Shown here piece by piece: positions 1,357 to 7,300 of a stretch of DNA of 64,000 nt. The notes under the pieces are model-generated. The model did not search any database and was not told the origin of the DNA. It saw only the letters and a list, made by a program, of their open reading frames with translations. The translations under genes were made by a program, and so were the position numbers. Source of the DNA: Macrostomum lignano (lineage: Eukaryota). Numbering within the stretch: position 1 is the first letter of the stretch; each line of letters begins with the position of its first letter. Location: the NCBI GenBank assembly GCA_002269645.1, contig NIVC01000032.1, forward strand, positions 868,001 through 932,000, in the 5' to 3' direction.

Positions 1357-4300
1357 ATGGCAACGAAGCAAAATAGTAGCCAGTCCTGGCAGGCTACGGA
1401 TGTGGAGGATAAAAGCAGACAGCTTGAGAGTTCTGGTCAGGAGAAGAAAGCGTTCCCAGCTCGAGCAGATATAAGCAGAACCGCCGTTGTCTACAGCGGC
1501 ATGTCACTGTTCAAGAAGACCAACACTGTTGGAACGAAAGTTCAAACGGCGATAGCTATGCCGTCGACCGGACCTGCTGGCGGCGAGCACGCCGCCCTCG
1601 CTGCGACCGGCGCTGCCGTTGCGCCGACGATAAAGTCGAACCCTGGCAGCGACGTTAACATGCAGCTGCTGTCGACTAGCAGCTTGCCGAATGACACGGC
1701 GGCTCACTTGTTCAAGGTATACATAATATTTGTGACATATTTCCTTTAGTACTTTTCGAGAATTACCACAGGAGTACTTTTTATTCTGTTCCATTCTTTA
1801 TTTTGTATTTGTGTATGTTTTTGGGTGTTCTAGCTCTTTTATCAGATAGACCATGCTTTTTTACTGAAAATATGTAAAGGTAGCTAGCTGTAAATAGGAA
1901 GCAGAATACTTCTGCTTTAGTGATGCAATAAAATATAACTTCAGCGGGTGATGCAATTTTGGCGGATACAGGGGATGGTCAATGGGGTCGGCTGACCCGG
2001 CCGGAAAAATCCTAAATCCAGCACAAGGAGGATGAGAAGTGGGGGCCGCTGTGCATTTTTAGAGTATGCACACGTATCCGTTCTCAAGAGTAAGGAGTTA
2101 GAAGAATGGAAGTAGCTAAATACGAATATATGATATTTGCTTCACTACTAAACTACATAGTCCTATAATCTCTCATCCTTACCACAGTGCGCAGTCTCTG
2201 GTATGGCGGACGAGCTTCGTCAGATATTCGACGGCAACTCCGAGGCCATCGAGACCACCAATGAGTACGGACAGAGCCTCCTGCACGTGGCCGCCAAAGC
2301 CGGTCAGACCAGCATCATCGCCCTGCTGATTGAGGAAGGCGCCAGTGAGTTTCAAAAGTAAAATATTTATTAATCTTCAATTCTCTTGACCGAATGGCAC
2401 TAAAACTTCCGGTTTTTTGTTTTCAGACATTGACTTTCAAGACAATGAAGGTAAAACGGCGCTGTACGAGGCCATCGAAGCGGACCAGGTGAAGACTGTC
2501 CGCCTTCTGGTTGAGCTGGGCGCCAACGTCAACTTGGCCACGGTGAGAGAGCGGAAGGCACCAGTTCACCTGGCCTCCGAGCTGAACCGGCTGGAGTGCC
2601 TGCAGGCACTTCGCGACTCGCCCGAGTGGAATGCCAACCTGGAGGGTTACCATGGCTACACGGCGTTGCACTTCGCCTGCAGCAGAGATGCCGCCGATGT
2701 TTGCCAACTTCTGGTGAGTCTGGCTGTGAAAGCAACAAAAGTGATTGTCGAACTTTGTTTAATAGTACAGCCCGTGATGGAGGGTTAATTAGCTTAGAGA
2801 TTAGGGCAACTGACTCTCGCGCTAAGGAGCTACACAGGTCTTATTCCATGCGCGACCAAATTAGTTTGGGACTCGTCCAGGGCCTTTTCTTTCGATTTAT
2901 GACCCGCTGTACGGTGCACCCTATACAATTGTATATCTGAGTACGCATCCATGTGCATGTTACTAGAATGGGCATGACCGCCTGCTCCCTCGCTGGGTTG
3001 CTGGTCAACTGTCGCCAGCAACTGTCGCCAGCAAGCAAGCCAAAATATGTTCGTATGTGATTCTGTGTTGCTTCAATTGAATGTCAAATAAATCCGTGCA
3101 CACCTGTGTCGTGTACAGCTAACTCTCTTGCCTGTCGATCTCTTTCTATTCTACTCCGGCTTTTCTACCCTTATCTTTTGTGCACTGTAAAAACTTTAGC
3201 GGCAATCTAGAGCATAACGATAGGGTTGAAAAAATATTCAGGTGCTAACTCAGGTGTCTAACTATAAAAAGGCTTCTTAACAGAATTGTCCAAGACGTAC
3301 CTTTTTCTGTAATTTTTTAAAACTCGACGCGAATAATGTTTTTAACAGTTTCACTGTGTGTCTTGGCTTTCGTTCTGTACTTTGTTCTGGTTGCCAAAGC
3401 ACCGAAGTCTGGCGACCCGCCGAGTCCAGGCTGGTACCCGCTAGTCGGCAGTTTGCCTTTCCTACGCGAGCCGCTCGAGGAGTTCCTTAGCGAGAAGCAG
3501 TTCGCCAAGCAGCCTGTTGTAGTTCTCTACATGGGCCTGGAGAAGCTCTACTGCTTAAACACTTACGAAGCGATTAAAGATGCTTTCATCTCGCAGGGTG
3601 ATAAGTTTCTGGGGCGTCAACAAACGTTTATCCTGCCCGAGCTGACCGGTGAGAAAGCGGGAATAATTCTAAGCGAGGATGAGCAGTGGCGTCTTTATCG
3701 ACGTTTGAGCTTGAAAACGCTTCGAGACTTCGGCTTCGGACGCCAGGGAGCCGAGGAAATTATCCTGGGCGAGGTGGAGGAGCTGCGATCGGGAATCGAA
3801 GACCAGGGCATTCAAGCCGGGCTCCCACTGGACACGGTACCATTGCTAAGCACGGCCGTCAGCAATGTCATCTGCCAGATGGTCTTCGGCACTCGGCTGG
3901 CCTCGGAGGATCCGGAGTTCGGTCGCGTCCTGGAGATGTTTCAACGAATTACGCAGAGCCAGAACAATCGGACTCGCAGCATGGTGTTCCAGCTTCATCA
4001 GAACTACTATGTGAAGCTTAAGCCTCTGCTGCGTCTAGTGATAGCACTGCGACGCAAGCAGATCAACATATTTGGCGAGCTGATCAAATTCTGTAGAAAG
4101 CAGCTTGAGAAGCACAAAGCCGACCTGGGCAGCCCGGAGCACCCCAGAGACTACATCGAAGCCTTCTTGCACCAACAGGCATCTAATCCGAGCGAGTTCA
4201 ACGACGTCCGACTCTCCCTGGCTGTGCTGGACCTTTTCATAGCGGGCACCGACACCACCTCGCAGACGCTCCGCTGGGCGATTCTGTTTCTTATTGAGAA

Positions 4301-7300
4301 TCCAGAAGTTGAGAAGCGTCTTGTGGACGAAATCAAGCGTGTCGTGGGTTCAGATCGACAGGTGACAATGAAGGACAAGAGCCAGTTGCACTACACCCAG
4401 GCCGTGATCGATGAGGTGAACCGGATGGCCTGTCTAGCTCAGTTAGGCGTCGCCCACAGGTGCACCGAGACTGCCAGAGTGTGCGGCTACGAAATTCCCA
4501 AAGACGCGCTGGTGCTGTTCAACATTTTCAACGTGCACAACAGCGTCGACCACTTTCCCCAGCCGGAGTGTTTCCGGCCGGAGCGGCACCTGGACCAGGA
4601 AGGTCGCTACTCGCCAGACGAACACCTGGTCACCTTTGGGATCGGTAAGAGGGCGTGTCTAGGCGAGAGCCTCGCTCGAATGGAGCTGTTCCTGTTCCTA
4701 ACCAACTTGGTCCAGCGGTTCACCTTCCGATTGGATCCCGAGGAGACTCGGACCATTGCTGAGATCAAGGCTAATCCCGGACATCAGGGCGGCGGCATCA
4801 GAGCTCCGGCGGTGCATAAAATCAAATTCGACAGCCGGCGCGAAGAGGAATAGTCTGGAGAGTCTGGAGACTTGATTCAATGGACGGACAGAAATTACAT
4901 TTGCTTCTTACAGATGCTTACCGTATAATTTCTCCCGATTTCTGAAAGGTTATAGCAAAACAAAACTGCTCAATCAAAGCCGTGAAGTGCTCAAAATTAT
5001 GACACTTTTAGGGACTACCGTTACAATTACAAAAAAACAAATTTAGATGTTTTTGTAGTCGGCTAGACGTACTACCAGGTACTCGTAGGTCCTATTTCTT
5101 ATAATTTGGTACGAGTAATTGCCTTTCTCAGACGATATTTGTCTACAGTATGGTCTTTCTAAAATAAAATACGAGCGTGGATAGATATATAGAAACTAAA
5201 ATATGATTAGCCAAAAATCTTTCACATTTATTGTTCAAATTTTTCGTTATGGTTTTCTAAGGGAAAGCTCCCTTATTCAACAGAAAGTTTCACAGACACG
5301 CGAAGGCAGAAGGACTATACGATTCCCATTTGAATGCGTAGTTTTCTCGGCTTTAGCTTTACAAAAGTAAAGATTAAATGTTTTTGTATTTTTTTATTTT
5401 ACTCCTTTCAGAGACCTCTTGATGTGTTACCATAGATAGAAGCTGTGGCGTGGGCAGGAATTTTAATTGGAGGGGCCGCTACCTTGAAGGGCAACAGTTT
5501 AATCAAGGGTTCGTTTCTCGACCTCTTGGGTGGGCGCCCCTGTCTCTTGGTGGGCGCCCCTGTCTCTTGGTGGCGCCCCTGTCTCTTGGTAGGCGCCACT
5601 TTCTCTTGGTGGGCGCTCCTTTCTCTTGGTGGGCGCTTCTTTCTCTTGGTGAGCACCCCTGTCTCTTGGTAGGCGCCACTTTCTCTTGGTGGGCGGCCCT
5701 GTCTCTTGGTGGGCGCCCCTGTCTCTTAGTGGGCGGCCCTGTCTCTTGGTGGGCACCCCTGTCTCTTGGTAGGCGCCACTTTCTCTTGGTGGGCACCCCT
5801 GTCTCTTGGTGGGCGCCGCTGTCTCTGGGTGGGCGGCCCTGTCTCTTGGTGGGCGCCCCTGTCTCTTGGTGGGCACCCCTGACCTCCGGCTCTCCTCTGC
5901 GTAGGCCACTGGATAGAAGTGACAGGAAAAATCGGCTTTAGTGATCAAACCAATGTTGGTTCTTCCCTTTTTCTATTCATTTATTTACGATTGGCATCGA
6001 AAAAAAGGTTTACAATCTTTTTCAATTTATCAGACATAAAATATGAAGTTATCAACAAAATTTATACCATGTATAGTCCATGCAGTCTTGAATATAATAC
6101 GACATTAATTTCTTACAAATGAAATAACATGTAAAAAACCTACCATCTTGAGAATAGTGACTGAGCAATAGCTAAATAATAAAAGCAATAGAAGTAAAGC
6201 TATTTCTGAAGTGTCTTCGAATGAGGTAAACGCAAGGCAAAGCGAATCCCAGGATCAGGCTCTGCTTAGCGACAACTGAAACAGGTAAAATCAGTAGATT
6301 GCATGTCTGAACAACGCCTAGTCATATTTTATTAGTGTGTTATTGGGTGATGGAGCATATAGCGAGAGAAATTAATTGAATAATAGGGATAATACACCGT
6401 TCCTAAAGCTGAGAAGTTTGCCTCTCTTGAGTTTCGCATTGCACTTATGATTGCCCCCAGAAGAAGAAGGAAGAAATTATGCAAGTGGACGATCGATGAA
6501 TGTGAGAAGTTCATCAAGAAGTTGAGCCATCGGATTCTATACATGCATAATTTATACTCATTATTCTGGATCAAGAATAAATATACCATAGCTATGTAAA
6601 ACCTTGACCATAATCCCACATTGAAAAGAATTCTTTTGTCTGAGACAACAAAGGAAAAGTTAGAGAAAGTCACACAGCAAGTTGTTGGTCTATAGTGCTC
6701 AAACAGAATCCTTTACCTCACTACGGAAGTCGATGCATTGAGGAAAGCTTTACTAAAAACTTTTATAGACTATCACAGCTTCTCGACTTTATTCTCTGCA
6801 CTGGGGGTTGTAGCCTAGTGGTTAGAGCGTCGGAAAGGTCGGGGGTTCGATTCTCGATCCCACTCGGAACAACTTGCGTCCTTGAGCAAGACACTTAACT
6901 CTGCATTGCCTCAGTTCACCCAGCTGTAAAATTGGTGCCAACATTAGCTGGGGTAATTGAGGGTGTGCGTGGCGACTACCCAGTCCTTGGACTGAAAAGT
7001 CGTACGCAGCCTTCAGATGCGCCGCGCAATAGCTGCGTCTGAGCTGTCGGTTGCACATCTGGCCCATTAGGGCAGGTGTAATTTATTGTTAATAAGGCTG
7101 AACCAGCAGCAGGCAAAAAGTAATGTTTCATAAAACTAACATTGTTTCATTGTGTGCCCTGGAGAGTAACCTGGAATAATTACAACGTCGAATTTTTCAG
7201 TTGGAAACCGAATGCCAGCCGTGCAAGCCGGACAACTTCGGCCAGTTTCCGTCGCACATTGCCGTCACGAACAGCAGCGCCAAATGCCTCAGCCTAATCG

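Follow-up and report, generated by a model that had tools for sequence, protein, structure and literature searches.

The 64,000-nt stretch of Macrostomum lignano DNA analysed here (contig NIVC01000032.1 of assembly GCA_002269645.1, positions 868,001 to 932,000 of the forward strand; hereafter the window, with positions counted from its first letter) carries a cytochrome P450 (P450) gene nested within a gene for a TRPA1-like channel. The P450 gene is complete, has no introns and shares the strand of its TRPA1 host: an open reading frame (ORF) of 505 amino acids (a.a.) runs uninterrupted from ATG to TAG inside the third coding intron of the channel gene (Table 1). Its start codon is set by an in-frame stop at 3318–3320, and no AG is found between this stop and the ATG. 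The nested pair itself is already in the public annotation, as the deposited gene calls of GCA_002269645.1 place a 505-a.a. p450 inside a 1343-a.a. ankyrin gene. An earlier, sequence-only reading of the window (the original prediction) had proposed that intron 3 of TRPA1 holds an intact clan-2 P450 without introns, on the strand of the host, a layout which the ORF, the Pfam match, the motifs and the splice junctions bear out; the interval it gave, 2714–7200, is exactly coding intron 3 (last base of exon 3 at 2713, first base of exon 4 at 7201).

The ORF matches the Pfam family p450 (PF00067) over residues 28–472 (E-value 2.2e-100; score 337 bits, gathering threshold 22.8). In a search of solved structures its top matches are CYP2B4, 2C5, 2C9 and 2C8 (E-values 1e-77 to 1e-70), and matches to other P450s are weaker (1e-55 to 1e-40 for CYP1/CYP17/CYP21 and 1e-22 for CYP3A). 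All motifs are at the positions expected of a P450: PPSP at residue 28, the I-helix AGTDTT at 303, EVNR (the K-helix ExxR) at 360, PERH (PERF-type) at 415 and the heme-thiolate loop FGIGKRACLG (FxxGxRxCxG) at 434, with a hydrophobic anchor at the N-terminus followed by a Pro-rich hinge, PPSPGWYPLVG. The Pfam score and the motifs together assign the protein to the P450 superfamily, and the structure matches and the N-terminal anchor with its hinge place it in the clan-2, microsomal type; the product is predicted to be a functional microsomal-type clan-2 monooxygenase. A foreign origin of the gene by horizontal transfer was considered and rejected, as its GC content at third codon positions is near that of the host exons (0.68 versus 0.73) and it has many native paralogs.

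The open frames that flank the P450 on the + strand encode ankyrin repeats (Pfam Ank matches are found on five exons). When the host frames are concatenated and compared with chains solved by cryo-electron microscopy, TRPA1 is the best match: 7ykr (Drosophila) with an E-value of 8e-98 and 6v9v (human) with 4e-93, the TRPA1 chains together spanning 8e-98 to 5e-92 as against 2e-63 for NOMPC and 8e-64 for ankyrin-1, which identifies the host as a TRPA1-type channel. The alignment is unbroken over the gap that holds the P450 (chain residue 211 is followed by 208), and both intron-3 junctions are canonical and in phase 0. The whole inner unit is held by this intron: a TATA box (at 3263), the coding sequence and an AATAAA (at 5163) all lie within it. 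Further downstream, the host peptide CCPVFECIQYLPEC aligns with human KC621PITEMIEYLPEC633, so that cysteines equivalent to C621 and C633 are kept; equivalents of human C641 and C665 were not located in the host by the cysteine alignment. The region of the pore, S6 and the TRP-like segment aligns well (67 bits) and the S1–S4 stretches align weakly (9–11 bits); scans of single host exons, as distinct from the full spliced model, gave no Ion_trans Pfam match. The host shares the ankyrin array, the C621/C633 linker and, to judge by the alignment, the pore and TRP-like region with TRPA1 of human (6v9v), Drosophila (7ykr) and planarian (Smed-TRPA1), and it looks like a genuine electrophile-sensing TRPA1, in agreement with the TRPA1 identity originally proposed. 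We know of no nested P450 in TRPA1 of other animals. Protein searches with peptides from the exon 3/4 junction and from the pore and C-terminal part returned just short fragments from other animals, and neither a Macrostomum paralog nor the protein of the window itself.

Table 1. Features of the nested P450 gene, its TRPA1-like host and host intron 3 (positions in the window)
Feature	Position	Strand	Basis
TRPA1-like host coding exon 1	1357..1716	+	ATG at 1357, donor GTATAC at 1717; deposited gene call begins at 1357
Host coding exon 2, first ankyrin repeat	2188..2344	+	Donor GTGAGT at 2345
Host coding exon 3, ankyrin repeats, phase-0 end	2427..2713	+	96.9% identity to duplicate copy, gapless
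Host intron 3, 4487 nt, encloses the P450 gene	2714..7200	+	DNA reading; donor GTGAGT at 2714, acceptor tttttcAG ending at 7200
Putative P450 promoter, conserved block ending in TATAAAA	3038..3269	+	Conservation between copies; function inferred
Predicted P450 5' untranslated region, ~45 nt, putative start	3291..3335	+	Ortholog contig starts; expected distance from the TATA box
Clan-2 (CYP2-like) P450 coding sequence, 505 a.a., intronless	3336..4853	+	ORF, Pfam, structure matches, motifs, dN/dS 0.10 and 0.07
Predicted P450 3' untranslated region, AATAAA at 5163–5168	4854..5190	+	AATAAA ~310 nt past the stop; ortholog 3' untranslated region at least 255 nt
20-nt minisatellite (CTCTTGGTGGGCGCCCCTGT, 18 copies), genome-wide repeat family	5523..5881		Repeat analysis
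Dispersed repeat of ~300 nt, possibly tRNA-derived, SINE-like	6803..7082		79–84% identity to 46432–46733, 63238–63421 and 49911–50143
Host coding exon 4, ankyrin repeats	7201..7647	+	Donor GTGAG at 7648
Remaining TRPA1 exons, approximate extent, boundaries unrefined	7648..20678	+	TRPA1 chain matches
Later ankyrin exons	~7.7–11.7 kb	+	TRPA1 alignment
Exon with the C621/C633-equivalent cysteines	~11.4–11.6 kb	+	TRPA1 alignment
Transmembrane, pore and C-terminal TRPA1 exons	~14–20.7 kb	+	TRPA1 alignment

A second copy of the locus is found on contig NIVC01003934.1, where the duplicate P450 (PAA49252.1; BOX15_Mlig010753g1) shares 98% protein identity with the gene in the window (a literature search on the locus tag Mlig010753 found no paper mentioning it). 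The two loci are colinear on the same strand for more than 20 kb at 88–96% identity, with a common order of a cadherin neighbour, TRPA1 exons 1–3, the P450, the minisatellite, and exon 4 with the later exons. The host exons of the duplicate have 92–100% a.a. identity to those of the window without gaps, although the annotation pipeline did not call TRPA1 there. The nesting is older than the duplication that gave rise to the two M. lignano copies. By the Nei–Gojobori method, the ratio of nonsynonymous to synonymous substitution rates (dN/dS) between the copies is 0.10 for the P450 (dS 0.084) and 0.077 for the host exons from exon 2 onward (dS 0.138); for the P450 against an 85%-identical ortholog from another species it is 0.07, with a saturated dS of about 1.4. 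Judged by these ratios, the P450 and the host are both functional and under purifying selection, and both are retained in the two copies. A pseudogenised TRPA1 in the duplicate, as a CAA to TAA change at the equivalent of window position 9143 might indicate, was rejected, as the change marks the end of an open frame, probably past the donor, and the host dN/dS is low. At 14940–14953 the duplicate is without ~170 nt that equal window positions 7038–7209, a segment in which the window has the acceptor of intron 3 and the opening three codons of exon 4; splicing in the duplicate may instead use another in-frame acceptor (aatgcCAG, directly followed by CCG).

The sequence upstream of the P450 has the features of a promoter. 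TATAAAA (3263–3269) lies 73 nt 5' of the ATG and is kept in the duplicate, and the 225-nt block that precedes it (3038–3262) is 95.5% identical between the copies, as against 82% with indels for the stretch from the TATA box to the ATG; such a contrast is to be expected where a leader under loose constraint follows a promoter. TATA[AT]A is found 73–118 nt before the ATG in all six P450 loci examined, nested or standalone (a TATA-like box is 83–118 nt 5' of the ATG in the four standalone paralogs); it occurs in 2.25% of random 60-nt stretches of intron 3. At the other end of the gene, the duplicate P450 has an AATAAA at an offset comparable with that in the window.

Indications of transcript ends come from the 85%-identical ortholog, which is represented by three short Logan contigs from three independent runs (SRR28338163-5). 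They begin 45, 39 and 1 nt 5' of the ATG and end 95–255 nt past the stop, and they contain neither TRPA1 exon sequence nor the M. lignano 35-nt spliced leader. The contig start at −45 fits the prediction from the TATA box at −73, and the ragged yet similar contig ends suggest that the contigs derive from RNA sequencing. It is therefore likely that the P450 is transcribed on its own from a TATA promoter and that the host spliceosome removes it with intron 3; both the use of the promoter and the ends of the transcript are predicted. Among the options originally raised for its expression (a start site of its own, a trans-spliced leader or shared TRPA1 5' exons), a start site of its own is the best supported, by the conserved TATA box and by the lack of a TRPA1 exon or leader in the ortholog contigs. 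A fusion protein of exon 3 and the P450 was rejected: the stop at 3318–3320 closes the P450 frame, and the sole upstream AG is out of frame. No expression data for the P450 or TRPA1 were found in one Macrostomum gut-gene paper.

The closest relatives of the nested P450 are its 98%-identical duplicate, the 85%-identical ortholog and further M. lignano proteins. It shares 42–52% identity with M. lignano paralogs of ∼502–509 a.a. and 30–38% with vertebrate and mollusc CYP2 proteins (full-length matches listed), and among the matches listed only Macrostomum proteins exceed 40%. By the convention of P450 nomenclature, membership of a family requires at least 40% a.a. identity, and among the matches listed the nested P450 does not reach this level with a named CYP2 member, so it is CYP2-like and not CYP2 in the strict sense. 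The 120 relatives listed include no P450 from a planarian or from any other flatworm outside Macrostomum. On these identities, the gene belongs to a Macrostomum-specific clan-2 expansion and is not an ortholog of the CYP2C/CYP2J arachidonate epoxygenases. With vertebrate CYP2 proteins (CYP2B4, 2C9, 2J2, 2U1 and 2R1) it has in common the fold family, the clan, the microsomal anchor with its Pro-rich hinge and the catalytic motifs; however, vertebrate CYP2 genes have nine exons whereas the nested P450 has no intron.

Four M. lignano paralogs (BOX15_Mlig026100g2, Mlig004603g1, Mlig013607g2 and Mlig029931g1) are like the nested P450 in length, in having 0–2 introns and in their TATA-like box, but they stand alone between unrelated genes: of the loci examined, only the gene in the window and its duplicate are nested. 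In two of the four paralog loci, retrotransposon ORFs (reverse transcriptase/integrase) lie 6.6–7.3 kb 3' of the P450. The paralogs fall into two subclades, one with the nested gene and P0003 (the closest listed M. lignano paralog, 52% identity) and the other with P0005, P0006 and P0007 (65–68% mutual identity). Standalone paralogs P0005 and P0007 are intronless and P0006 has about two introns; P0003 has a single intron of 579 nt at codon 286 in phase 1. A scallop CYP2-like gene has three introns, all in phase 1, and the second of them is five residues from the intron of P0003, which may be ancestral and lost in the lineage of the nested gene. Recurrent intron loss fits this distribution, as intronless and intron-bearing genes are found in both subclades.

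In our view the locus is probably a same-strand nested pair of the ordinary kind, in which the enzyme and the channel do not form a functional unit. The P450 transcript would be driven by the TATA box, start ∼45 nt 5' of the ATG and end at its own AATAAA ∼310 nt past the stop, and the host pre-mRNA would be spliced so that the whole P450 unit is removed with the 4.5-kb intron 3. As the inner gene is intronless, it adds no functional inner splice junctions to the host transcript, which is the condition that would tolerate nesting on the same strand. That the two genes lie together is most likely a matter of chance, one copy of the P450 having landed, or stayed, in a roomy intron; the pair was nested before the duplication, and both genes have been constrained since. 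In Drosophila, ∼10% of the genes are in nested structures (Lee & Chang 2013, PMC3814207), 71% of nested genes being on the strand opposite to their host and ∼29% on the same strand; the single-exon share is 72.5% for same-strand nested genes versus 37.4%, for which the authors invoke selection against mis-splicing (PMC3814207). The combination seen in M. lignano, same-strand and intronless, is therefore the expected one, and a form of nesting so typical offers no a priori grounds for presuming functional coupling; in Drosophila, a nested gene and its host in fact show weaker correlation of expression and function than neighbours do (PMC3814207). Like the same-strand single-exon nested genes of Drosophila (PMC3814207), the M. 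lignano case is a complete intronless gene within a single intron of a larger host gene of neuronal type; it differs in being in a trans-splicing flatworm, in that the inner gene is a P450 and not a testis-biased young gene, and in that its independent expression is deduced here from sequence features.

Several points weigh against this reading. For M. lignano, the site at which the P450 transcript starts, its lack of a trans-spliced leader and its use of the poly(A) site are all inferred, as are the RNA-sequencing origin of the three Logan contigs and the absence of functional coupling, which sequence cannot show. The retention of the pair in both copies is also predicted by selected linkage, although mere inheritance of the duplicated segment predicts it equally well. 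A CAG at 3281–3283, 52 nt 5' of the ATG and kept as CCAG in the duplicate, could act as a trans-splice acceptor, and trans-splicing affects about 30% of the genes of M. lignano (PMC8629364).

The same CAG and the same prevalence of trans-splicing, along with the 15% of M. lignano genes that are in operons (PMC8629364), speak for an account in which the P450 has no promoter and shares the transcription unit of TRPA1, being cut from its pre-mRNA by spliced-leader trans-splicing in an operon-like manner or used as an alternative terminal exon. We regard this as improbable. The CAG is the only one upstream and reads TAACAG (TACCAG in the duplicate), off the reported acceptor motif [T/C]TNCAG, and it is just 12 nt past the conserved TATA box, i.e. 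5' of the predicted start site; the ortholog contigs, as described above, have neither leader nor TRPA1 exon; exon 3 cis-spliced to the CAG would not be in frame with the ATG, the stop closing the P450 frame; and the deposited annotation has two separate products. An artefact of assembly or annotation, with the P450 misplaced in the intron or the flanking exons taken from different genes, might be suspected in a genome that is very repeat-rich and in which TRPA1 is uncalled in the duplicate, but its probability is negligible: two independently assembled contigs agree in order and orientation, the intron has canonical splice sites of matching phase, and TRPA1 homology is continuous over it. Misassembly, a possibility that the original prediction itself had named, is excluded because the second assembled copy, on a separate contig, is colinear. 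A retrogene origin, by insertion of a reverse-transcribed P450 mRNA into the intron of TRPA1, is possible but rather unlikely. It would explain why the gene is intronless while its closest listed M. lignano paralog has one intron, an intron whose near-coincidence with the same-phase scallop intron hints at an ancestral position; yet the family is intron-poor (0–2 introns in Macrostomum, three in scallop), and recurrent intron loss explains the intronless state equally well. There is no A-tract after the AATAAA, and searches for direct and inverted repeats around the P450 found no convincing transposon ends or target-site duplications, the direct repeats being of only 12 nt, at chance level. 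In addition, the TATA box is within the range of the paralogs (−73 to −118) and is preceded by a conserved block, whereas retrocopies are normally without the parental promoter. If the insertion is old, as the dS to the ortholog would allow, its scars would have decayed, and the question may be undecidable. The original argument from intronlessness to retroposition thus loses its force, given the intron counts of the paralogs, the missing poly(A) and target-site marks, and a TATA box typical of the family.

The most far-reaching alternative, and the one put forward originally, is a sensor-plus-enzyme module, in which the P450 would produce or remove agonists of TRPA1 (such as oxidised lipids or electrophiles) and be nested for co-regulation or mutual exclusion with the channel; we consider it very improbable. 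Both genes are on one strand and under purifying selection in both copies, and planarian TRPA1 reportedly has links with both nociception and reactive oxygen species. As the host keeps the cysteines aligned with human C621 and C633, the idea is conceivable, though not evidenced. Because the P450 lies inside the intron, host polymerases must pass its poly(A) signal, and such read-through would make interference possible and mechanistically plausible. On the other side, the P450 is one of many Macrostomum-specific paralogs, and the four examined are standalone genes with a TATA-type layout like its own; an identity of at most 38% to the listed full-length CYP2 matches allows no inference of substrate; the lack of non-Macrostomum flatworm P450s among the 120 relatives listed suggests that the pair is lineage-specific and not an old unit; and the Drosophila pairs (PMC3814207) argue against coupling by default. 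Retention in both copies, for its part, is trivial after a segmental or whole-genome duplication. The analogy to CYP2C/2J enzymes that make epoxy-fatty acids, on which the proposal drew, does not transfer to a P450 of a Macrostomum-specific expansion with such low identity to the listed CYP2s and no orthology to CYP2C or CYP2J. A related reading, a selectively maintained pair in which the enzyme tunes the agonist pool of the channel, or in which transcription of one gene gates its partner through read-through or competition for poly(A) sites, has in our view a very slim chance; if true, it would be a hard-wired link of chemical sensing to detoxification in a flatworm.

As an ordinary nested pair, the locus would be a clean example, from a trans-splicing flatworm, of the rule known from flies that same-strand nested genes tend to be intronless. 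The analysis also presents the Macrostomum clan-2 P450 expansion as intron-poor and TATA-driven, and it flags an annotation gap, the uncalled TRPA1 of the duplicate locus. The pair would be of interest to sensory biology only if expression and knock-down revealed a coupling of enzyme and channel.

Intron 3 and the other host introns are rich in repeats. The minisatellite array in intron 3 spans ∼0.36 kb in the window versus ∼1.4 kb in the duplicate locus. The CTCTTGGTGGGCGCCCCTGT family, with units of 20–21 nt, recurs in other TRPA1 introns (12803–13076 and 15014–15444), and an inverted array of the family, ∼1.3 kb in length, is found at ∼27046–28400. Very long simple repeats are present in the host introns and make up much of the gene length, including (TTAG)104, (GATT)115, (ACT)116 and (TGA)60; a CT-rich 39/117-nt array of ∼0.84 kb and 22-nt and 16-nt minisatellites are also present. 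These repeats and minisatellites are located at window positions 1–412, 7966–8427, 9315–10157, 15816–16162, 17210–17389, 18311–18844 and 19368–20036. Neither the Rfam scan nor the tRNA scan detected an RNA gene in intron 3. The dispersed repeat of ∼300 nt near the 3' end of this intron may be a tRNA-derived short interspersed element (SINE): its copy at 46.7 kb overlaps the sole Rfam match of the window, a tRNA-like sequence at 46663–46732 (− strand).

Outside the host gene, a protein kinase gene is encoded in several widely spaced exons at ∼50665–59759 on the + strand, with Pfam Pkinase matches on three open frames; from the look of its sequence, it may be polo-like or PLK4-like. The open frames at ∼28977–30223 (+ strand), one of which was scanned and had no Pfam match, resemble a membrane transporter, which may be SLC17/MFS-like.

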